A stretch of 63,633 nt of DNA, counting the filler, from Octopus bimaculoides (Eukaryota), in the NCBI RefSeq assembly GCF_001194135.2. It is 6 parts of 6 records of this genome, joined end to end, with 100 filler letters (N's around TTAATTAATTAA, not from the genome) between each part and the next. Parts side by side here need not be neighbours in the genome. Positions count along the whole stretch, not along the records: positions 13,040 to 40,950 come from NC_069007.1; 5 more parts are not named here. One strand, given 5' to 3'. Within the stretch, counting starts at the first letter, position 1; each line of letters begins with the position of its first letter. Positions 15,430-38,248 of this stretch are shown here, piece after piece. The position numbers were made by a program, and so were the translations under genes. Under the pieces are notes generated by a model that had not been told where the DNA came from, did no database searches, and saw nothing but the letters and a program-made list of their open reading frames with translations.

Positions 15430-15567
15430 CTCTCTTCGTTGTTTTTCTACAATTGATGTAACTTGATCTAATAAGTCATCTAATTTAGTTTCTGTTGCGT
15501 CTTTTCCCATAGAAGCAAGAGACAAAGCACGGTCAAGGGGGAAGAAATCATAATTCTCCTTGTTCAA
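15430..15567 (-). CDS. ITPR-like exon (LNKENYDFFPLDRALSLASMGKDATETKLDDLLDQVTSIVEKQRRE)
   Basis: 138 bp, phase 0/0. Matches ITPR NLDWFPRMRAMSL followed by the coiled-coil start. Confidence 0.92.
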
Positions 15568-16441: not shown

Positions 16442-16561
16442 CAATCGAAACACATACATCTCCAGCGCGTTGTAGTCATTTACTTTTGTACCATTTAAAT
16501 GAATGAAGAAGAAAATATAGGCCCACATGTTGTGTTCATATGTGACGTGGTGCTCGAATCC
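16442..16561 (-). CDS. ITPR-like exon (GFEHHVTYEHNMWAYIFFFIHLNGTKVNDYNALEMYVFRL)
   Basis: 120 bp, phase 0/0. Matches ITPR FEEHIKEEHNMWHYL..EYTGPESYV, including the H-x4-H Zn ligands. Confidence 0.95.
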
Positions 16562-17028: not shown

Positions 17029-18291
17029 NNNNNNNNNNNNNNNNNNNNNNNNNNNNNNNNNNNNNNNNNNNNNNNNNNNNNNNNNNNNNNNNNNNNNNNN
17101 NNNNNNNNNNNNNNNNNNNNNNNNNNNNNNNNNNNNNNNNNNNNNNNNNNNNNNNNNNNNNNNNNNNNNNNNNNNNNNNNNNNNNNNNNNNNNNNNNNNN
17201 NNNNNNNNNNNNNNNNNNNNNNNNNNNNNNNNNNNNNNNNNNNNNNNNNNNNNNNNNNNNNNNNNNNNNNNNNNNNNNNNNNNNNNNNNNNNNNNNNNNN
17301 NNNNNNNNNNNNNNNNNNNNNNNNNNNNNNNNNNNNNNNNNNNNNNNNNNNNNNNNNNNNNNNNNNNNNNNNNNNNNNNNNNNNNNNNNNNNNNNNNNNN
17401 NNNNNNNNNNNNNNNNNNNNNNNNNNNNNNNNNNNNNNNNNNNNNNNNNNNNNNNNNNNNNNNNNNNNNNNNNNNNNNNNNNNNNNNNNNNNNNNNNNNN
17501 NNNNNNNNNNNNNNNNNNNNNNNNNNNNNNNNNNNNNNNNNNNNNNNNNNNNNNNNNNNNNNNNNNNNNNNNNNNNNNNNNNNNNNNNNNNNNNNNNNNN
17601 NNNNNNNNNNNNNNNNNNNNNNNNNNNNNNNNNNNNNNNNNNNNNNNNNNTACCACCACCACCACCACCACCACTACCACCACCACCACTACCACCACCA
17701 CCACTACCACCACCACCACTACCACCACCATCACCACCACCTTTTCCTCATCCTTATCCTTCTCCCTTCCTACACATCCCACCTTTATGTCTCACCTATA
17801 TTGGTGACACACTCTGCCACTCTTTGACATAAACCTCCATTTGCCTATTAGCTGTTTGCAGTGAGTAGATGACAACAAAATCATAGTGATGGCGCACCAC
17901 TCTGGTAGCTCATTGCAGTAACACTGAACATCCTAACAAAAAAATATGAGTTTTACATCCTGTATGACGATTCCTTGACCCAAATGTAAACAACTATATA
18001 AGTGATTTGGAAGAAGATAAAGCAGAAATACAGTACTCGTATGGTGTTTGTTTGGTATTTAATTAATGAGAGAGACGGAAGAAGGAAGATACGAGAATGT
18101 TTATTGATTGCAACAAACGTATTATTAATACTTTTTCCATTGTATTGTGTATTTGTTTCTTTTTGCATCTTTTATTTATTATTGATCTTGTATAATAATG
18201 AAGCTGTTTCTCTTAATTTGCTGTTTTTCTATACACATACCAAAAAGAAAACTTATGGAACAGACGTTATTTTAATGAGATACATCTTGTA

Positions 18292-18492: not shown

Positions 18493-18645
18493 CTTGAGAT
18501 CTCGGAGTTCCGAGAAGGTATCAACGATGATACCAAAGATTATGTTAAGGCCAATTGTCGTAATGAAGATGAAAAATGATACGTGGAAAAGAACCACCAA
18601 CCCGAATTTAGCGAATGTTGCCTCGTCTTTATGAGCTTTGATCGA
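18493..18645 (-). CDS. ITPR-like exon, TM6/S6 (SIKAHKDEATFAKFGLVVLFHVSFFIFITTIGLNIIFGIIVDTFSELRDLK)
   Basis: 153 bp, phase 0/0. Strong match to ITPR/RyR LNLIFGVIIDTFADLR. Confidence 0.95.
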
Positions 18646-18829: not shown

Positions 18830-19102
18830 NNNNNNNNNNNNNNNNNNNNNNNNNNNNNNNNNNNNNNNNNNNNNNNNNNNNNNNNNNNNNNNNNNNNNNN
18901 NNNNNNNNNNNNNNNNNNNNNNNNNNNNNNNNNNNNNNNNNNNNNNNNNNNNNNNNNNNNNNNNNNNNNNNNNNNNNNNNNNNNNNNNNNNNNNNNNNNN
19001 NNNNNNNTATATATATATACACACATATATATGTACATATATATATGCATATACATAATGTATGTATATATATTTATATATGTATGTGTATATATGTATG
19101 TG

Positions 19103-19147
<45 letters not shown>

Positions 19148-19441
19148 GGGTGTGTGCATAAATATATGTATACATATATGTATGTGTATATACATATATA
19201 CATATATGTGTGTATGTGTGTGTGCATGTGTGTGTATGCGTGTGTGCGTGTCCATCTGTATGTGTGTGTATGTGTGTGTATGTGTGTGTGTGTGGGTGTA
19301 TTGTGTATGTGTATGTGTGTTTGCGTTTATGTATATGGAAATGTGTTCATATGTGTGTGTGTGTGCAGTTGCATGCATCTATATATATGTATATATATAT
19401 ATGTGTGTGTATATGTGCGTGTGTGCGTGATTGCCACTCAC

Positions 19442-19617
19442 CTCAAATAGGTCCCCGATAAGACCATAGCGAACTACTGTGACCGTACACTGCCACAGGG
19501 AAGCACAATAAAGATATTCATTTGGGTCGAACATATTTCTCATCATAGCAAAACCAATGATGCCGTATAGATAGAACACTACCATGCCAAGGATGCCAAC
19601 CCAAACCAATGATTTGC
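19442..19617 (-). CDS. ITPR-like exon, TM5 + pore helix + filter ([58 protein letters not shown])
   Basis: CAG acceptor, GTGAGT donor, 176 bp, phase 1/0. Resembles ITPR NGRSIILTAVLALILVYLFSIVGY..CETLLMCIVTVL. Confidence 0.95.
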
Positions 19618-20188: not shown

Positions 20189-21437
20189 NNNNNNNNNNNN
20201 NNNNNNNNNNNNNNNNNNNNNNNNNNNNNNNNNNNNNNNNNNNNNNNNNNNNNNNNNNNNNNNNNNNNNNNNNNNNNNNNNNNNNNNNNNNNNNNNNNNN
20301 NNNNNNNNNNNNNNNNNNNNNNNNNNNNNNNNNNNNNNNNNNNNNNNNNNNNNNNNNNNNNNNNNNNNNNNNNNNNNNNNNNNNNNNNNNNNNNNNNNNN
20401 NNNNNNNNNNNNNNNNNNNNNNNNNNNNNNNNNNNNNNNNNNNNNNNNNNNNNNNNNNNNNNNNNNNNNNNNNNNNNNNNNNNNNNNNNNNNNNNNNNNN
20501 NNNNNNNNNNNNNNNNNNNNNNNNNNNNNNNNNNNNNNNNNNNNNNNNNNNNNNNNNNNNNNNNNNNNNNNNNNNNNNNNNNNNNNNNNNNNNNNNNNNN
20601 NNNNNNNNNNNNNNNNNNNNNNNNNNNNNNNNNNNNNNNNNNNNNNNNNNNNNNNNNNNNNNNNNNNNNNNNNNNNNNNNNNNNNNNNNNNNNNNNNNNN
20701 NNNNNNNNNNNNNNNNNNNNNNNNNNNNNNNNNNNNNNNNNNNNNNNNNNNNNNNNNNNNNNNNNNNNNNNNNNNNNNNNNNNNNNNNNNNNNNNNNNNN
20801 NNNNNNNNNNNNNNNNNNNNNNNNNNNNNNNNNNNNNNNNNNNNNNNNNNNNNNNNNNNNNNNNNNNNNNNNNNNNNNNNNNNNNNNNNNNNNNNNNNNN
20901 NNNNNNNNNNNNNNNNNNNNNNNNNNNNNNNNNNNNNNNNNNNNNNNNNNNNNNNNNNNNNNNNNNNNNNNNNNNNNNNNNNNNNNNNNNNNNNNNNNNN
21001 NNNNNNNNNNNNNNNNNNNNNNNNNNNNNNNNNNNNNNNNNNNNNNNNNNNNNNNNNNNNNNNNNNNNNNNNNNNNNNNNNNNNNNNNNNNNNNNNNNNN
21101 NNNNNNNNNNNNNNNNNNNNNNNNNNNNNNNNNNNNTACTGCCCATGCTACACCTCGCAATCAATGCTGTTGTTTTTATTGTTGGTATTGTGGTTTGTTA
21201 TTTAACCCTAGGTTAATTAATTGTGGTTGAGTAGACTTGTGATCATGTACATTCCAGCCGAGACCATCGCGCCGTTTTTGTTACTGGATTTTCTGGTATA
21301 TTTGCTGAATTTTTCAGATGAAATTTAGAACCCCCCCCCCAAAAAAGGGTTGGCTGACTTGCATACCAACACGACTCTGGAGGACCAAAAATTCCTTGTG
21401 GAACGCAGCAGGATTTGGTACTCTCTTGGTTACCATA

Positions 21438-21740: not shown

Positions 21741-21786
21741 CACACAGCATTAGGAAAGATATTAACGATAGTTGAATGATTACACC

Positions 21787-21957
21787 ACATGTTTATACTA
21801 AATGTTTATACTACATGTTTACACTACATGCGCACACCACATGTTTATGATACATGTTTGTGCCGCATGTTCGTGCTACATGTTTACGCTACACGTTCGC
21901 ACCGCATGTTTATGCCACATGTTTATACTACATGTTTATGCTACATGTTTACACTAT
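21787..21957. repeat. Degenerate 13-bp minisatellite (ACATGTTTATACT) x~13
   Basis: Read directly from the sequence. Confidence 0.85.
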
Positions 21958-22312
21958 GCACTATATTGAGTTGTATGGCAGAAAATTCAATAACATGAAA
22001 ACCTATATGTATTTATATTATATACATATATACATACACATATATGCATATGCAATCCATACATAGATACATACATACATATGTATATATGCATACATAC
22101 ATGCACACACGCATACACACACACACACACGTTTCCATGTATATATGTGTCTATGTATGTATGTATGTATGTATGTGTGTGTCTATGTATCGATACCTCT
22201 ATAAGCATAGAACATTAAATTTCGAAGCTGGTGCTCCAGCATGGTCTTCCCTGCAATAGCTTAAAACACAAACTAAGAAACCAACAAGAACGGAAAGCAA
22301 AGAAATCTACAT

Positions 22313-22669
22313 CTGTCTGTCTGTCTGTCTCTCTTTCTGTCTGTCTGCCTTTCTGTCTGTCTGTCTGTCTGTCTGTCTTTCTGTCTGCTTGTCTGTCTGT
22401 CTGCTTGTGTGTCTGTCAGACTGTCTGTCTGTCTGCTTGTCTGTCTTTCTGTCTGTCTGTTTGTTAGTCTGTCTGTTTGCTTGTCTGTCTGTTTGCTTGT
22501 CTGTCTGTCTGCTTGTCTGTCTGTCTGCTTGTCTGTCTGTCTGCTTGTCTGTCTGTCTGCTTGTGTGTCTGTCAGACTGTCAGACTGTCTGTCTGCTTGT
22601 CTGTCTGTCTTTCTGTCTGTCTGTTTGTTAGTCTGTCTGTTTGCTTGTCTGTCTGTCTGCTTGTCTGTC
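22313..22669. repeat. (GTCT/GCTT)n tetranucleotide array
   Basis: Read directly; runs into a gap. Confidence 0.95.
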
Positions 22670-23562
22670 NNNNNNNNNNNNNNNNNNNNNNNNNNNNNNN
22701 NNNNNNNNNNNNNNNNNNNNNNNNNNNNNNNNNNNNNNNNNNNNNNNNNNNNNNNNNNNNNNNNNNNNNNNNNNNNNNNNNNNNNNNNNNNNNNNNNNNN
22801 NNNNNNNNNNNNNNNNNNNNNNNNNNNNNNNNNNNNNNNNNNNNNNNNNNNNNNNNNNNNNNNNNNNNNNNNNNNNNNNNNNNNNNNNNNNNNNNNNNNN
22901 NNNNNNNNNNNNNNNNNNNNNNNNNNNNNNNNNNNNNNNNNNNNNNNNNNNNNNNNNNNNNNNNNNNNNNNNNNNNNNNNNNNNNNNNNNNNNNNNNNNN
23001 NNNNNNNNNNNNNNNNNNNNNNNNNNNNNNNNNNNNNNNNNNNNNNNNNNNNNNNNNNNNNNNNNNNNNNNNNNNNNNNNNNNNNNNNNNNNNNNNNNNN
23101 NNNNNNNNNNNNNNNNNNNNNNNNNNNNNNNNNNNNNNNNNNNNNNNNNNNNNNNNNNNNNNNNNNNNNNNNNNNNNNNNNNNNNNNNNNNNNNNNNNNN
23201 NNNNNNNNNNNNNNNNNNNNNNNNNNNNNNNNNNNNNNNNNNNNNNNNNNNNNNNNNNNNNNNNNNNNNNNNNNNNNNNNNNNNNNNNNNNNNNNNNNNN
23301 NNNNNNNNNNNNNNNNNNNNNNNNNNNNNNNNNNNNNNNNNNNNNNNNNNNNNNNNNNNNNNNNNNNNNNNNNNNNNNNNNNNNNNNNNNNNNNNNNNNN
23401 NNNNNNNNNNNNNNNNNNNNNNNNNNNNNNNNNNNNNNNNNNNNNNNNNNNNNNNNNNNNNNNNNNNNNNNNNNNNNNNNNNNNNNNNNNNNNNNNNNNN
23501 NNNNNNNNNNNNNNNNNNNNNNNNNNNNNNNNNNNNNNNNNNNNNNNNNNNNNNNNNNNNNN

Positions 23563-24355: not shown

Positions 24356-24855
24356 GGAGGCGCAATGGCCCAGTGGTTAGGGCAGCGGACTCGCGGTCGT
24401 AGGATCGCAGTTTCGATTCCCAGACCGGCCGTTGTGAGTGTTTATTGAGCGAAAACACCTAAAGCTCTCCGAGGTTCCGGCAGGGGATGGTGGCGAACCC
24501 TGCTGTACTCTTTCACCACAACGTTCTCTCACTCTTACTTCCTGTTTCTGNNNNNNNNNNNNNNNNNNNNNNNNNNNNNNNNNNNNNNNNNNNNNNNNNN
24601 NNNNNNNNNNNNNNNNNNNNNNNNNNNNNNNNNNNNNNNNNNNNNNNNNNNNNNNNNNNNNNNNNNNNNNNTTCAAAGGGGTCAGCCTTGTCACACTCTG
24701 TGTCACACTGAATATCCCCTAGAACTATATTAAGGGTACACGTGTCTGTGGAGTGCTCAGCCACTTGCACGTTAATCTCACGAGCAGGCTGTTCCATTGA
24801 TCGGATCAACTGGAACCCTCGACGTCGTAAGCGACGGAGTGCCAACAACAACAAC
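24356..24855 (+). mobile_element. tRNA-derived SINE, near full length (family A), with (CAA)n tail
   Basis: A box GGCCCAGTGG, B box GTTTCGATTCC, body shared with the copies at 16701 and 21438. Confidence 0.85.
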
Positions 24856-24970: not shown

Positions 24971-25132
24971 TTGAAAAAGATGACTATATTTTTCAGGTTG
25001 GGAAGACTTGGGTGATTGCAGACAAAGTAGCTGATGAGTACTAACATAGAGAAAAAGTTATGCATGCCTCCCATCACGTAAATTGCGATTGTATACTGTT
25101 CTTGTGTCAGTGTGTGGATTACTGGAACGGGA
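24971..25132 (-). CDS. ITPR-like exon, TM2 (PVPVIHTLTQEQYTIAIYVMGGMHNFFSMLVLISYFVCNHP...)
   Basis: Phase 2/2 with CAG and GTAAGT boundaries. Completes the split codon GA|T from the previous exon. Confidence 0.9.
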
Positions 25133-26632: not shown

Positions 26633-26755
26633 TCGTCTATACCTTCAACAAGTGTTGAATTTCCTTTCTGAAGAGAAGCTTTTGCATTCCAAGTGATGAG
26701 CATCATAATGTTGATGGCGAAACTTAATATCGTCACCATATGGTTCCAAAATAGC
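26633..26755 (-). CDS. ITPR-like exon, TM1 (LFWNHMVTILSFAINIMMLITWNAK...EGID)
   Basis: Phase 2/2 with TAG and GTAAGT boundaries. Hydrophobic segment at the TM1 position. Confidence 0.92.
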
Positions 26756-27360: not shown

Positions 27361-27530
27361 CATCCTTTTGTTAGAAGAAGTGCTAATGGATTTCCTAGAA
27401 TTCGTCTTTGATAGGCGATATCTTTCATTATGTCTTTTGCCCATTCCATCAAATCTCTTATTTTATTACTGGGAGAAGATCGGTCAACATTCCATTTCAA
27501 CTTCTCTTTTACTTCTTCTCGTAGAACTCG
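27361..27530 (-). CDS. ITPR-like exon (RVLREEVKEKLKWNVDRSSPSNKIRDLMEWAKDIMKDIAYQRRILGNPLALLLTKG)
   Basis: TAG acceptor, GTATGT donor, phase 0/2. Resembles ITPR FLTKESK..ERDEQGSKINDF..EMNWQKKLR. Confidence 0.93.
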
Positions 27531-29348: not shown

Positions 29349-29421
29349 TTTGTTCCGGACTCTGAAATTAATCTTCTGGAGACAATCGTCTTTCACAATT
29401 TCAATTGAAGAACAATTTTTC
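29349..29421 (-). CDS. ITPR-like exon, partial (KNCSSIEIVKDDCLQKINFRVRNK)
   Basis: Resembles ITPR [22 protein letters not shown]. Donor AAA|GTAAG. 5' part is in the gap. Confidence 0.88.
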
Positions 29422-29991
29422 NNNNNNNNNNNNNNNNNNNNNNNNNNNNNNNNNNNNNNNNNNNNNNNNNNNNNNNNNNNNNNNNNNNNNNNNNNNNNNN
29501 NNNNNNNNNNNNNNNNNNNNNNNNNNNNNNNNNNNNNNNNNNNNNNNNNNNNNNNNNNNNNNNNNNNNNNNNNNNNNNNNNNNNNNNNNNNNNNNNNNNN
29601 NNNNNNNNNNNNNNNNNNNNNNNNNNNNNNNNNNNNNNNNNNNNNNNNNNNNNNNNNNNNNNNNNNNNNNNNNNNNNNNNNNNNNNNNNNNNNNNNNNNN
29701 NNNNNNNNNNNNNNNNNNNNNNNNNNNNNNNNNNNNNNNNNNNNNNNNNNNNNNNNNNNNNNNNNNNNNNNNNNNNNNNNNNNNNNNNNNNNNNNNNNNN
29801 NNNNNNNNNNNNNNNNNNNNNNNNNNNNNNNNNNNNNNNNNNNNNNNNNNNNNNNNNNNNNNNNNNNNNNNNNNNNNNNNNNNNNNNNNNNNNNNNNNNN
29901 NNNNNNNNNNNNNNNNNNNNNNNNNNNNNNNNNNNNNNNNNNNNNNNNNNNNNNNNNNNNNNNNNNNNNNNNNNNNNNNNNNNNNNNNNNN

Positions 29992-31250: not shown

Positions 31251-31316
31251 TAGCGCCGCAGACAGTAACGTCTGCGGGGATTGACGACGACGATGATGAT
31301 AATGGTGGTGGTGGTG

Positions 31317-31377
<61 letters not shown>

Positions 31378-31430
31378 GGATGGTGACGATGATGATGAAG
31401 ATGGTGATGATGACGACGACGACGATGATG

Positions 31431-31462
<32 letters not shown>

Positions 31463-32139
31463 GATGATGGTGACGATGATGATGNNNNNNNNNNNNNNNN
31501 NNNNNNNNNNNNNNNNNNNNNNNNNNNNNNNNNNNNNNNNNNNNNNNNNNNNNNNNNNNNNNNNNNNNNNNNNNNNNNNNNNNNNNNNNNNNNNNNNNNN
31601 NNNNNNNNNNNNNNNNNNNNNNNNNNNNNNNNNNNNNNNNNNNNNNNNNNNNNNNNNNNNNNNNNNNNNNNNNNNNNNNNNNNNNNNNNNNNNNNNNNNN
31701 NNNNNNNNNNNNNNNNNNNNNNNNNNNNNNNNNNNNNNNNNNNNNNNNNNNNNNNNNNNNNNNNNNNNNNNNNNNNNNNNNNNNNNNNNNNNNNNNNNNN
31801 NNNNNNNNNNNNNNNNNNNNNNNNNNNNNNNNNNNNNNNNNNNNNNNNNNNNNNNNNNNNNNNNNNNNNNNNNNNNNNNNNNNNNNNNNNNNNNNNNNNN
31901 NNNNNNNNNNNNNNNNNNNNNNNNNNNNNNNNNNNNNNNNNNNNNNNNNNNNNNNNNNNNNNNNNNNNNNNNNNNNNNNNNNNNNNNNNNNNNNNNNNNN
32001 NNNNNNNNNNNNNNNNNNNNNNNNNNNNNNNNNNNNNNNNNNNNNNNNNNNNNNNNNNNNNNNNNNNNNNNNNNNNNNNNNNNNNNNNNNNNNNNNNNNN
32101 NTTTCCTTTCCGTAATTAGTTCCAATAAAGTTAACTTAC

Positions 32140-32319
32140 AATCACTCCCTGAATGAAACTTCCGCCTGCTAGGGCGAACGATTTCGCTGTTTGCATGTAG
32201 CTTCCAGAGCCGGACAAATTCTTCAAGTCTTCAAGTTTAGTTTTATCCGGTTGATGCATTTCATAGCATTCCGTCATTAGTTGAAGAACTGCTTTCTTGT
32301 CAAGAGTGTCTTTGACTTC
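32140..32319 (-). CDS. ITPR-like exon (EVKDTLDKKAVLQLMTECYEMH...GGSFIQGVI)
   Basis: CAG acceptor, GTAAGT donor, 180 bp, phase 0/0, in frame with the preceding exon. Confidence 0.87.
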
Positions 32320-33564: not shown

Positions 33565-33648
33565 CTTTGCAACCTGTGATGGTCCAGGACCATTTTCTTC
33601 AATCAAGGATACAATCAAATTTGCGATACTTTGTCGCAATTCCAGAAC
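33565..33648 (-). CDS. ITPR-like exon (VLELRQSIANLIVSLIEENGPGPSQVAK)
   Basis: TAG acceptor, GTAATG donor, 84 bp, phase 0/0. Resembles ITPR LELKNNASKLLLAIME. Confidence 0.92.
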
Positions 33649-34647: not shown

Positions 34648-34749
34648 CTTTTCAGTGAGGCAGTCGGCAAAGTCCCCAGCTCTGAGTATAAAATTGATAT
34701 AGTCAATTATCTTGTTGTCGTAGATAACAACACGATTATCCTGGTTACT
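34648..34749 (-). CDS. ITPR-like exon (SNQDNRVVIYDNKIIDYINFILRAGDFADCLTEK)
   Basis: Poly-T acceptor, GTGAG donor, 102 bp, phase 0/0. Resembles ITPR ENQNCIA..GIDIITALIL. Confidence 0.92.
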
Positions 34750-35863: not shown

Positions 35864-36013
35864 CGCTGTAAATTCATTGATTGAGTCAAATAGTTGGATC
35901 ACTAAATCTATGCTTCTGCCATTTATATTCGAATAGACGACGTCGAGGAAGCGAGTCACCTCAGCAATAATGTCAAATGATTTCACGTTGTCAGGTTGTT
36001 CCCGCAGATAATT
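35864..36013 (-). CDS. ITPR-like exon (NYLREQPDNVKSFDIIAEVTRFLDVVYSNINGRSIDLVIQLFDSINEFTA)
   Basis: TAG acceptor, GTATGT donor, 150 bp, phase 0/0. Resembles ITPR NFLRCQ..YNLVCETLQFLD..LESLTEYC. Confidence 0.92.
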
Positions 36014-36899: not shown

Positions 36900-36949
36900 C
36901 TGTAACTGCTGGTTTTGACCGTCGCACATTCGTGCCATGACCTTGAGTA
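36900..36949 (-). CDS. ITPR-like exon, partial (LKVMARMCDGQNQQLQ), start of RIH-associated domain
   Basis: Resembles ITPR LRFLQLLCENHNRDLQ. Donor CAG|GTAAGT. 5' part is in the gap. Confidence 0.85.
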
Positions 36950-37447
36950 NNNNNNNNNNNNNNNNNNNNNNNNNNNNNNNNNNNNNNNNNNNNNNNNNNN
37001 NNNNNNNNNNNNNNNNNNNNNNNNNNNNNNNNNNNNNNNNNNNNNNNNNNNNNNNNNNNNNNNNNNNNNNNNNNNNNNNNNNNNNNNNNNNNNNNNNNNN
37101 NNNNNNNNNNNNNNNNNNNNNNNNNNNNNNNNNNNNNNNNNNNNNNNNNNNNNNNNNNNNNNNNNNNNNNNNNNNNNNNNNNNNNNNNNNNNNNNNNNNN
37201 NNNNNNNNNNNNNNNNNNNNNNNNNNNNNNNNNNNNNNNNNNNNNNNNNNNNNNNNNNNNNNNNNNNNNNNNNNNNNNNNNNNNNNNNNNNNNNNNNNNN
37301 NNNNNNNNNNNNNNNNNNNNNNNNNNNNNNNNNNNNNNNNACAGTAAACATAAGAGCACCACAGCAAACCACAGCACATACCCAAGGCGCACAGAGCTGC
37401 GCTCGGTAGTGAAGTGAAAGCACGTTATAAAAATAAAACTACTGAAC

Positions 37448-37593: not shown

Positions 37594-38008
37594 TTGTAAG
37601 AAACTCTAGAGAGGGTTGGACAATTGAAAGTCTTCAGAGAATAAATCACTCCACCTCGTGCACATGTTTCGGTCCTGAGATTCTTACACTCCAAGGGCGC
37701 CGAGTGGCATCCAGGTCATGGCTCCCTCTGCTCTCCCAGTTTGCGATACTACCACCTGCATTACAGTCTGTAGCTTCCTGGATGGTTAAGGTACAGCCCC
37801 GCCCCAGCTCAGATACACGAAGAAAATAAAAAAAAAAGGCACTAGTATTTTCTTTGTACCTAACAATCATATCATCGAACAGATATAACACAACGTGTTT
37901 ACTTAAAAAAAAAGAAATGGTTTTTCACTTCTGACGCGACAGAGAGCGGTGTCGGTTGTTGAAGTCCCCCGAACATTCTTTTATCAAAAAGTCTTTGAGA
38001 AATCTTAC

Positions 38009-38248
38009 CTCAATTTTCACCGAGACCTCTGGTTCTAGTTCCGGCATATCAATCATTAATGCTTCCTCCTCTTTCATCAGAGGATTTGCGAACGTCACTT
38101 CCTTTTTAAAACCATTTGCTTGGATCTCTTTTTTTGATTTGTTTTTCGGTAACGTTTTCTGGTTCTTTGTTTTCTTGTCTTTGGCAGCGGATGGCTTCTT
38201 GCGTTGCTTGTTGGAGGCGGCGGAGGAGGAGGACTGTTTCCGCTTTGT
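38009..38248 (-). CDS. ITPR-like exon, Lys/Ser-rich linker (TKRKQSSSSAASNKQRKKP...PEVSVKIE)
   Basis: Open frame with donor GAG|GTAAG at 38009. Acceptor is ambiguous (38248 or 38233, same frame). No recognisable motif, so assignment rests on position and strand. Confidence 0.6.

Follow-up and report, generated by a model that had tools for sequence, protein, structure and literature searches.

A channel gene of Octopus bimaculoides with an IP3R-B-type pore that lacks the GGG filter

The filter motif GGGxGD is treated as a conserved hallmark of conducting pores in inositol 1,4,5-trisphosphate receptors (IP3R) and ryanodine receptors (RyR) (PMC3194816). Besides IP3R-A (ITPR1-3) and RyR there is a further subfamily, IP3R-B, whose description PMC9113742 and PMC7992859 credit to Alzayady et al. 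2015; the bilaterian ancestor is held to have possessed IP3RA, IP3RB and RyR (PMC7992859, following Alzayady et al. 2015). IP3RB has been lost in vertebrates, is missing from Drosophila and C. elegans, and has been called 'understudied' (PMC7992859); few papers in the searchable literature mention it at all. Leech has five genes of the superfamily, a pair each of IP3RA and IP3RB and a single RyR (Heath-Heckman et al. 2021, PMC7992859), and ip3rb2 of Hirudo verbana specifically marks touch (T) neurons (PMC7992859). Here we describe the pore of an octopus gene of this kind, LOC106877374, part of which lies within positions 13,040 to 40,950 (record NC_069007.1) of a joined stretch of 63,633 nucleotides from Octopus bimaculoides (assembly GCF_001194135.2). 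We refer to this whole stretch as the window, and all positions count along it. The filter encoded by the octopus gene reads GLIGDLFE and contains no GGG.

The pore exon and its place in the superfamily

The end of transmembrane segment S5, the luminal turn, the pore helix and the filter are encoded by a single exon on the minus strand, positions 19442..19617. It is bordered by the acceptor ...tttttgcag, followed by GC, at 19617, and by the donor gtgagt, preceded by GAG, at 19442. Its open frame translates into 59 residues and joins in phase 0 to the exon 18645..18493, which reads SIKAHKDEATFAKFGLVVLFHVSFFIFITTIGLNIIFGIIVDTFSELRDLK. Orthologous exons are found at colinear positions in Lymnaea and Candidula, with about 80% amino-acid identity and an identical filter stretch; tblastn E values for the homology of the pore exon, 1e-24 to 1e-34, are far beyond chance. 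An earlier note, made from the sequence of the window, had delimited the same interval as one clean exon and had pointed out that both pore-helix cysteines are kept while GGG is absent. Exactly one exon with consensus splice sites is indeed present there, and its translation contains both cysteines. The filter codons, again on the minus strand, are G 19465-19463, L 19462-19460, I 19459-19457, G 19456-19454, D 19453-19451, L 19450-19448, F 19447-19445 and E 19444-19442. The turn between S5 and the pore helix, DPNEYLY, is short, as had been noticed, but counts 7 residues instead of the approximately 11 first estimated, compared with about 62 in human IP3R1. N runs interrupt the locus piece at 13 places, none of them in contact with the pore exon.

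The peptide of the pore exon alone gives no significant match in Pfam or PDB, and neighbouring exons are needed. Joined exons of the window match the Pfam domains RIH_assoc (2e-11) and Ion_trans (5.5e-6), both above the curated cut-offs. Against solved structures their best matches are ITPR1-3 (E about 1e-22), those to RyR1-3 (about 1e-10) being twelve orders weaker. In the 2256-residue RefSeq model of the gene, XP_052833111.1, Pfam reports Ins145_P3_rec, MIR, RIH (RYDR_ITPR) and RIH_assoc, with Ion_trans not reported; the first three of these domains are encoded beyond the window. The complete relatives from Tubulanus (2674 residues, XP_074653546.1) and Saccoglossus (2473 residues) possess the same four domains plus Ion_trans. 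Neither SPRY nor RyR-repeat domains were detected by Pfam in these three proteins. Foldseek, run with the AlphaFold 2 (AF2) model of the Macrostomum orthologue, places IP3R1/3 first and RyR next. This monomer model has an overall predicted local distance difference test score (pLDDT) of 65 and yields Foldseek template modelling scores of about 0.3, low because of domain arrangement, so we use it for fold class and helix limits only. The assignment to the IP3R/RyR superfamily made in the earlier note thus stands, carried by RIH_assoc, Ion_trans and the top structural matches to ITPR1-3.

Three other identities were considered for the gene. Short acidic filters occur in TRP-type channels (GMGD in TRPV, LGD in PKD2), and LIGD may recall them at first sight. 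The resemblance, a pore helix followed by a G-x-G-D-like turn, is an analogy without detectable homology past the six-transmembrane fold, and a polycystin or TRP channel is ruled out by RIH_assoc, the EHNMW region and the PDB matches. A canonical ITPR is rejected because the gene falls outside the IP3RA clade and has neither GGG[VI]GD nor the long luminal S5-pore loop. A ryanodine receptor is rejected by the lack of SPRY and RyR repeats, of GGGIGDE and of IIQGLIIDAF, and by the weaker PDB matches. A homology search for a canonical ITPR in Octopus returned short, mostly vertebrate fragments and no octopus entry.

Searches with the channel-domain exons bring up fragments from lophotrochozoans that carry the label 'ITPR-like', just as the earlier note had suspected of automatic annotation. 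Named close relatives come from molluscs, annelids, a nemertean, a flatworm, an acorn worm and amphioxus, with no vertebrate among them. Five Helobdella proteins from the supplementary FASTA of PMC7992859 could be sorted by their filters: GVRAGGGIGDE marks one as RyR, GLRNGGGIGD marks two as IP3RA, and the remaining two are thus IP3RB. This last pair reads VVHYGLVGDIFSK and VIRYGLVGQIFDK, and its S6, TTIGLNIIFGIIVDTF, is the same as in the octopus gene.

For the channel and C-terminal domain, a neighbour-joining (NJ) tree was computed on the 286 columns left after trimming, with 200 bootstrap replicates and with the Helobdella RyR, the sole RyR included, as root. Octopus groups with both Helobdella IP3RB proteins (87% bootstrap) inside a spiralian group A that also holds Tubulanus, Macrostomum and others (82%). 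Its sister paralogue, group B (Patella, Elysia, Mya), receives 100%. A clade of 29 members, which includes Branchiostoma, Capsaspora and choanoflagellates and excludes IP3RA, is found with 96%, and the IP3RA clade, made of human ITPR1/3 and Helobdella IP3RA, with 100%. Judged by this tree, the octopus gene is a member of IP3R-B, the third bilaterian branch beside IP3R-A and RyR. The proposal of a separate and poorly characterised clade was therefore right as to separateness and understudied status, but the clade already bears the name IP3R-B and the octopus gene is already present in RefSeq. Nor is the gene a single-species variant nested within canonical ITPRs, since it lies outside the IP3RA clade and its motif occurs in several phyla.

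Among described channels, leech IP3RB (Helobdella Helro_162842… and Helro_176697…) resembles the octopus gene in pore helix, loop length and kind of filter (YGLVGDIFSK and YGLVGQIFDK), with near-identical S6 and C-terminal motifs. It differs in being an annelid gene with two copies, one of which has Q for D after the second glycine. Capsaspora CAOG_04510, which may be the cloned CO.IP3R-B, and S. rosetta PTSG_02461 share architecture, the short S5-pore turn and IFGIIVDTF. IP3R-A (ITPR1-3 and Helobdella IP3RA) shares with the octopus gene the domain order, the pore helix with two cysteines, the S6 gate motif, the Zn-finger histidines, the Ca2+-sensor acidic residues and most basic IP3 contacts. 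The octopus gene departs from it by the missing GGG[VI]GD, the luminal loop of 7 against about 62 residues and an extended C-terminal tail rich in Ser and Pro. Within the channel domain, IP3R-A of leech and of vertebrates agree at 60-70% of residues; inspection of the multiple alignment points to a much lower identity for the octopus protein. With RyR the octopus gene has in common the superfamily, the short S5-pore turn and the Ca2+-sensor positions, whereas GGGIGDE, the S6 motif IIQGLIIDAF, SPRY/RyR repeats and the length of about 5000 residues are missing.

Filter motif and loop length across the clade

As the earlier note had proposed, pores of the GLIGD type were looked for among the relatives and placed on a tree; G-h-h-G-D (h standing for a hydrophobic residue) turned up in several phyla of the separate clade. 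In group A, the motif following the pore helix is G-h-h-G-x (27 sequences). Its last position is D in 22 of the 27, and GLIGD itself appears 14 times. An acidic residue usually stands three positions past this D, as in GDLFE, GDLFD, GDYDE, GDITD and GDMFE. Named bearers of the motif are Lymnaea, Candidula, Pomacea, Capitella, Helobdella, Tubulanus and Macrostomum. Filters of group B follow the pattern HHG[FLI][VS][DE]… and have neither GGG nor GD.

The group B paralogue is also present in oysters, Batillaria, Lamellibrachia and Paralvinella, with filters such as HHGFVDTPY, HHGIVEGMY and HHGLSDGMY (proteins P0005, P0006, P0008, P0009, P0011, P0079, P0085 and P0102; loci L004-L006). One compact Logan contig of this paralogue (L004) shows the full IP3R domain order, while the oyster RefSeq models have just 250-262 residues, starting at S5. 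Upstream walks in the Lymnaea, Candidula and Lamellibrachia loci gained little. Filters of an intermediate kind, GLLDTIGQF, GLIEPIGLI and GLIDNIGLL, in which 'IG' is kept and the glycine run lost, are carried by further full-length relatives from metagenome or ENA data (P0115, P0117, P0119, P0167 and P0039).

Outside Spiralia, the filter reads GLLESFHESIG in Saccoglossus kowalevskii (P0106) and GLMENLHKPL in Branchiostoma belcheri (P0100), both without GGG; invertebrate deuterostomes, a chordate among them, have thus retained a relative of IP3R-B. The change accordingly predates the split of protostomes and deuterostomes, the gene having been lost later toward vertebrates. Unlike octopus, choanoflagellate relatives mostly keep GGGLGE (S. 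rosetta, S. infusionum, S. urceolata and Diaphanoeca), which is also kept in Corallochytrium, and the Capsaspora filter is GLENGLASVGIAD. The loss of GGG is thus old, at least bilaterian, and clade-wide rather than octopus-specific. In the searchable literature, which did not extend to the text of Alzayady et al. 2015, we found no description of a conserved GGG-less filter in bilaterian IP3R-B, and the leech IP3RB paper (PMC7992859) makes no mention of pore or filter. The conserved filter of bilaterian IP3R-B appears to be undescribed so far.

The pore exon is under strong purifying selection. Over 641 codons, Octopus and Lymnaea differ at a proportion of 0.17 of non-synonymous sites (pN; 0.11 in the pore exon) and 0.87 of synonymous sites (pS), and with synonymous sites saturated a ratio of non-synonymous to synonymous substitution rates (dN/dS) is not computable for this pair. 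Lymnaea and Candidula give dN/dS figures for some exons only: dN 0.051 and dS 1.62 for the pore exon, dN 0.043 and dS 1.14 for the S6 exon. These values are far from a ratio near 1, and no disabling mutation interrupts the exons found. A microexon restoring GGG is likewise contradicted, as the motif lies inside one contiguous exon. In one relative (P0001), the filter is followed by NLVSHP… on a contig of 2 kb that reads through several exon junctions joined in the same way; this contig is transcript-like, which indicates that the junction of pore and S6 exons is used.

A truncated filter with five residues missing, as put forward in the earlier note, does not agree with the length of the loop. 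From the second pore-helix cysteine to LNxxFG in S6 we count 47 residues in Octopus, Tubulanus, Macrostomum and leech IP3RB. Human IP3R1 has the same 47, as do 151 of 191 GGG-type channels. Since the counts are equal, the pore loop is not shorter, and comparison of the sequences indicates that GGG is replaced, the filter being rewritten at constant length. Alignment programs place the gaps differently. HMMER, used pairwise against ITPR2, opens a gap of five residues after GL (GL.....IGD) and offsets it by gaps of 2+3 in ITPR2 downstream. These are precisely the gaps expected if five filter residues had truly been deleted and an independent insertion of five residues before S6 had balanced the loss, octopus IGD being the counterpart of VGD; moreover, I-G-D followed by L resembles V-G-D followed by V/I-L. 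Such a history, however, calls for two indels that offset each other so precisely that the ancestral 47 is regained. MAFFT, applied to 58 sequences, aligns the filter region without any gap, and hhalign, comparing the profile of group A with that of GGG-type channels, sets GLI--GDLFE over GLRxGGGIGD with a gap of only two residues, compensated by two residues after a further two, and pairs octopus E with the canonical filter D. The acorn-worm sequence GLLESFHESIGIPA aligns gaplessly both to octopus (shared ESI) and to the choanoflagellate GLLSGGGLGEALPA (shared PA), which again speaks against a deletion. We regard the deletion as unlikely. Judged by sequence, octopus GD may or may not be the equivalent of the GD in GGGVGD, and either of its acidic filter residues could be the counterpart of the canonical Asp. 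The AF2 monomer of Macrostomum, in which transmembrane pLDDT is 73-86, gives a hint only: the pore helix ends at the I of GLI, G-D comes right after, then a short turn LFEN, and S6 begins at the conserved F.

We therefore read 19442..19617 as the pore exon of an IP3R-B channel in which GGGxGD has been replaced by GLIGDLFE at constant length, the replacement being inherited, Spiralia-wide and selected, and we assign this reading a probability of about 0.8. Several points weigh against it. Filter glycines and the Asp of ITPR1 and RyR are needed for conduction according to mutagenesis, so that a glycine-free filter could mean a non-conducting protein. Deep nodes within the 29-member clade are weak (6-56% bootstrap) in an NJ tree that rests on 286 columns, those that link bilaterian IP3R-B to Capsaspora and choanoflagellate proteins receiving 6-36%. 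The octopus gene model is incomplete, with the S3-S4 and CxxC exons in assembly gaps, so that the gene as a whole is only provisionally intact. Finally, the IP3R-B of Capsaspora is cited in PMC9113742 as unable to bind IP3, which is the one functional datum that we found cited.

Remaining exons, gaps and gene models

Exons were located as exon-sized open frames on the minus strand, by tblastn with retrieved homologues and by tblastx against the Lymnaea locus (L001). Fifteen colinear conserved exons were found from about 38104 down to the stop codon at 13334-13332, all open and with GT-AG borders. The gene had been called intact, and for the sequenced exons the open frames, splice borders and purifying selection agree with this.

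All exons lie on the minus strand and are described here in the direction of transcription. The conserved part of the most upstream one (KEVTFANPLMKEEEALMIDM…) spans 38006..38104, the RefSeq model extending it to about 38248. It is followed by the fragment LKVMARMCDGQNQQLQ at 36900..36947, adjoining an N run (36950-37340), and by two exons of the RIH_assoc region, NYLREQPDNVKSF…INEFTA at 35864..36013 (Pfam, ITPR2 alignment and tblastx against Lymnaea) and SNQDNRVVIYDNKIIDYINFILRAGDFADCLTEK at 34648..34749 (Pfam and tblastx against Lymnaea). The exons VLELRQSIANLIVSLIEENGPGPSQVAK at 33565..33648 and EVKDTLDKKAVLQLMTECYEMHQPDKTKLEDLKNL… at 32140..32319 were recognised by tblastx against Lymnaea. 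The fragment KNCSSIEIVKDDCLQKINFRVRNK at 29349..29420 loses its 5' part to the N run 29422-29991. Then come the exon preceding S1, RVLREEVKEKLKWNVDRSSPSNKIRDLMEWAKDIMKDIAYQRRILGNPLALLLTKG(W), at 27361..27530 (ITPR2 alignment and tblastx against Lymnaea), the S1 exon (LFWNHMVTILSFAINIMMLITWNAK…) at 26633..26755 and the exon for the luminal loop and S2 (…YVMGGMHNFFSMLVLISYFVCNHPSLPNLKN…) at 24971..25132, the last two identified by tblastn and by tblastx against Lymnaea. Downstream of the pore exon, the loop behind the filter and S6 (…FFIFITTIGLNIIFGIIVDTFSELRDLK) are encoded at 18493..18645, in phase 0 at both ends. The C-terminal linker exon GFEHHVTYEHNMWAYIFFFIHLNGTKVNDYNALEMYVFRL, with the His half of the Zn-finger region, occupies 16442..16561 and aligns to ITPR2 2576-2656. 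A further C-terminal exon, LNKENYDFFPLDRALSL…, at 15430..15567 is 94% identical to Lymnaea. The last coding exon, 13335..14096, begins in coiled-coil-like fashion and continues into a Ser/Pro/Arg-rich tail of 254 residues. Lymnaea shares blocks of this tail, such as SPLRYDADEPGVRNLSPVCYDD, at 48-65% identity; canonical ITPRs, unlike the octopus gene, end shortly past the coiled coil.

Two exons of the orthologues are missing from this series. The S3-S4 exon (…YFFAFHLLNIVNNNQLL.GVI.AVTQN), which Lymnaea among others possesses, was not found in the sequenced parts of the window, where N runs at 20189-21136, 22670-23562 and 24551-24671 separate the S2 exon from the pore exon. The exon WTAE.DM..CFIC…YDFEH, with the Cys half of the Zn finger, would belong where the N run 17029..17650 now stands. 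Most likely, both are hidden in N runs. Introns are crowded with simple repeats, namely (ACC)n-like 15-mers, (TA)100, a 26/65-bp satellite, (TCTG)n x 22 and (GAT)64, at 17652-17741, 19008-19207, 21776-21956, 22312-22669 and 31292-31484. Several directly abut N runs, which is probably why the assembly breaks at this locus. No tRNAs were found in the window.

A profile search of 1.8 billion representatives retrieved an Octopus bimaculoides protein of 943 residues with exons identical to those of the window. In RefSeq it is XP_014790409.1, 'inositol 1,4,5-trisphosphate receptor-like protein A'; a more recent model of this gene, XP_052833111.1, is labelled 'uncharacterized protein'. Both models skip the S3-S4 and CxxC exons, and both carry two short exons on the minus strand, 31008-30898 (HTARLVTEPAISCREPNALTMGPPRRVIHIQLNGQEP) and 24069-24037 (GDHRHNLSKGS). 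The latter have no counterpart in the Lymnaea locus and seem to bridge gaps. With two exons omitted and two doubtful ones included, the annotated proteins differ from the real one.

Permeation and function of the octopus channel

Sites known from IP3R are kept to differing degrees. S6 of the octopus gene, NIIFGIIVDTF, aligns to ITPR NLIFGVIIDTF, so that the gate Phe of IP3R1 is kept and Val stands for Ile. In the Zn-finger region, HH…EHNMW is seen in the window and CFIC in orthologues, the CxxC exon falling probably in the gap 17029-17650. The two acidic positions of the Ca2+ sensor were placed by extending the ITPR2 alignment to the residues named in PMC9522344. The first is D of MCDGQN (codon 36923-36921, minus strand; LCENHN in ITPR), common to all relatives seen, and the second is E of INEFTA (codon 35875-35873, minus strand); they lie 54 residues apart in octopus and 64 in ITPR. 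In the IP3-binding core, KNRQKLMR of octopus and RKERQKLMR of Pomacea match NRERQKLMR, and SRKN matches YRKN, while a longer loop, R-I-R…HRP[RK], takes the place of RTTGR. Equivalents of K/R504, R506, K508, R511, R568 and K569 are kept, those of T266, T267, G268 and Y567 are not. This mixed conservation would neither support nor exclude gating by IP3.

The octopus protein would form a tetrameric cation channel of the endoplasmic reticulum (ER) membrane. Its gating parts would be IP3R-like, with the Phe/Val gate of S6, the His half of the Zn finger, the acidic residues of the Ca2+ sensor and most basic contacts to IP3 phosphates. In place of the flexible, carbonyl-lined glycine loop there would be a rigid, bulky I-G-D-L-F-E, bringing four Asp and four Glu per tetramer. 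With the filter segment replaced, conductance and the selectivity between Ca2+ and monovalent ions should differ from those of ITPR and RyR. A cation-conducting ER channel with altered permeation is our best guess, and one we hold somewhat more probable than its negation. The terms 'release-type channel' and 'different selectivity', applied to the octopus protein by the earlier note, may be apt, but they are deduced from sequence.

The replacement could alternatively have produced a pore-dead regulatory or scaffolding subunit, for instance a modulator of IP3R-A, a ligand sensor or an ER tether. GGGxGD, the hallmark of conducting pores (PMC3194816), is absent in octopus, and filters drift widely in the clade, group B having neither GGG nor GD. 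Nevertheless, the pore helix, the two filter acidic residues, S6 and the gate positions are better conserved across phyla than any other part of the protein, and the pore exon has a dN of 0.05 beside a dS of 1.6. In a non-conducting scaffold, G-h-h-G-D-x-x-D/E and NIIFGIIVDTF would hardly be expected to stay almost without variation. We consider a dead pore improbable. Finally, the 13 N runs and the RefSeq models with two conserved exons skipped and two doubtful ones added might suggest that the odd filter is spurious, the product of a pseudogene, faulty assembly or wrong annotation. This is extremely improbable and, for the pore exon, rejected, because the filter lies within a single exon that is sequenced well and without a break and has consensus splice sites, the motif recurs in independent genomes and on the transcript-like contig of 2 kb, and 15 of 15 conserved exons were found open and colinear with Lymnaea.

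With the replaced filter taken as a genuine, inherited trait of a cation channel, a broader proposal can be put forward tentatively, and we would not yet bet on it: bilaterian IP3R-B may be a functionally distinct class of intracellular channel, to which the conserved, doubly acidic filter would lend permeation unlike that of ITPR and RyR, serving specialised cells. Such a class might, for example, prefer monovalent ions or pass a Ca2+ flux of low conductance, and one leech copy does mark touch neurons. For the octopus genome, the analysis means that the current models of LOC106877374 are to be flagged as incomplete owing to assembly gaps.

The GGGxGD filter of the textbook Ca2+ release channels IP3R and RyR has been taken as universal, and bilaterian IP3R-B departs from it. 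In this ancient third branch, found in many invertebrates, absent from model organisms and almost uncharted in function, the pore has dropped GGG but is unchanged in length and retains the pore helix, the gate of S6 and two acidic residues, in a form held by selection across phyla. The natural filter variants of IP3R-B could be used for structure-function work, where the question is what a pore without GGG conducts.

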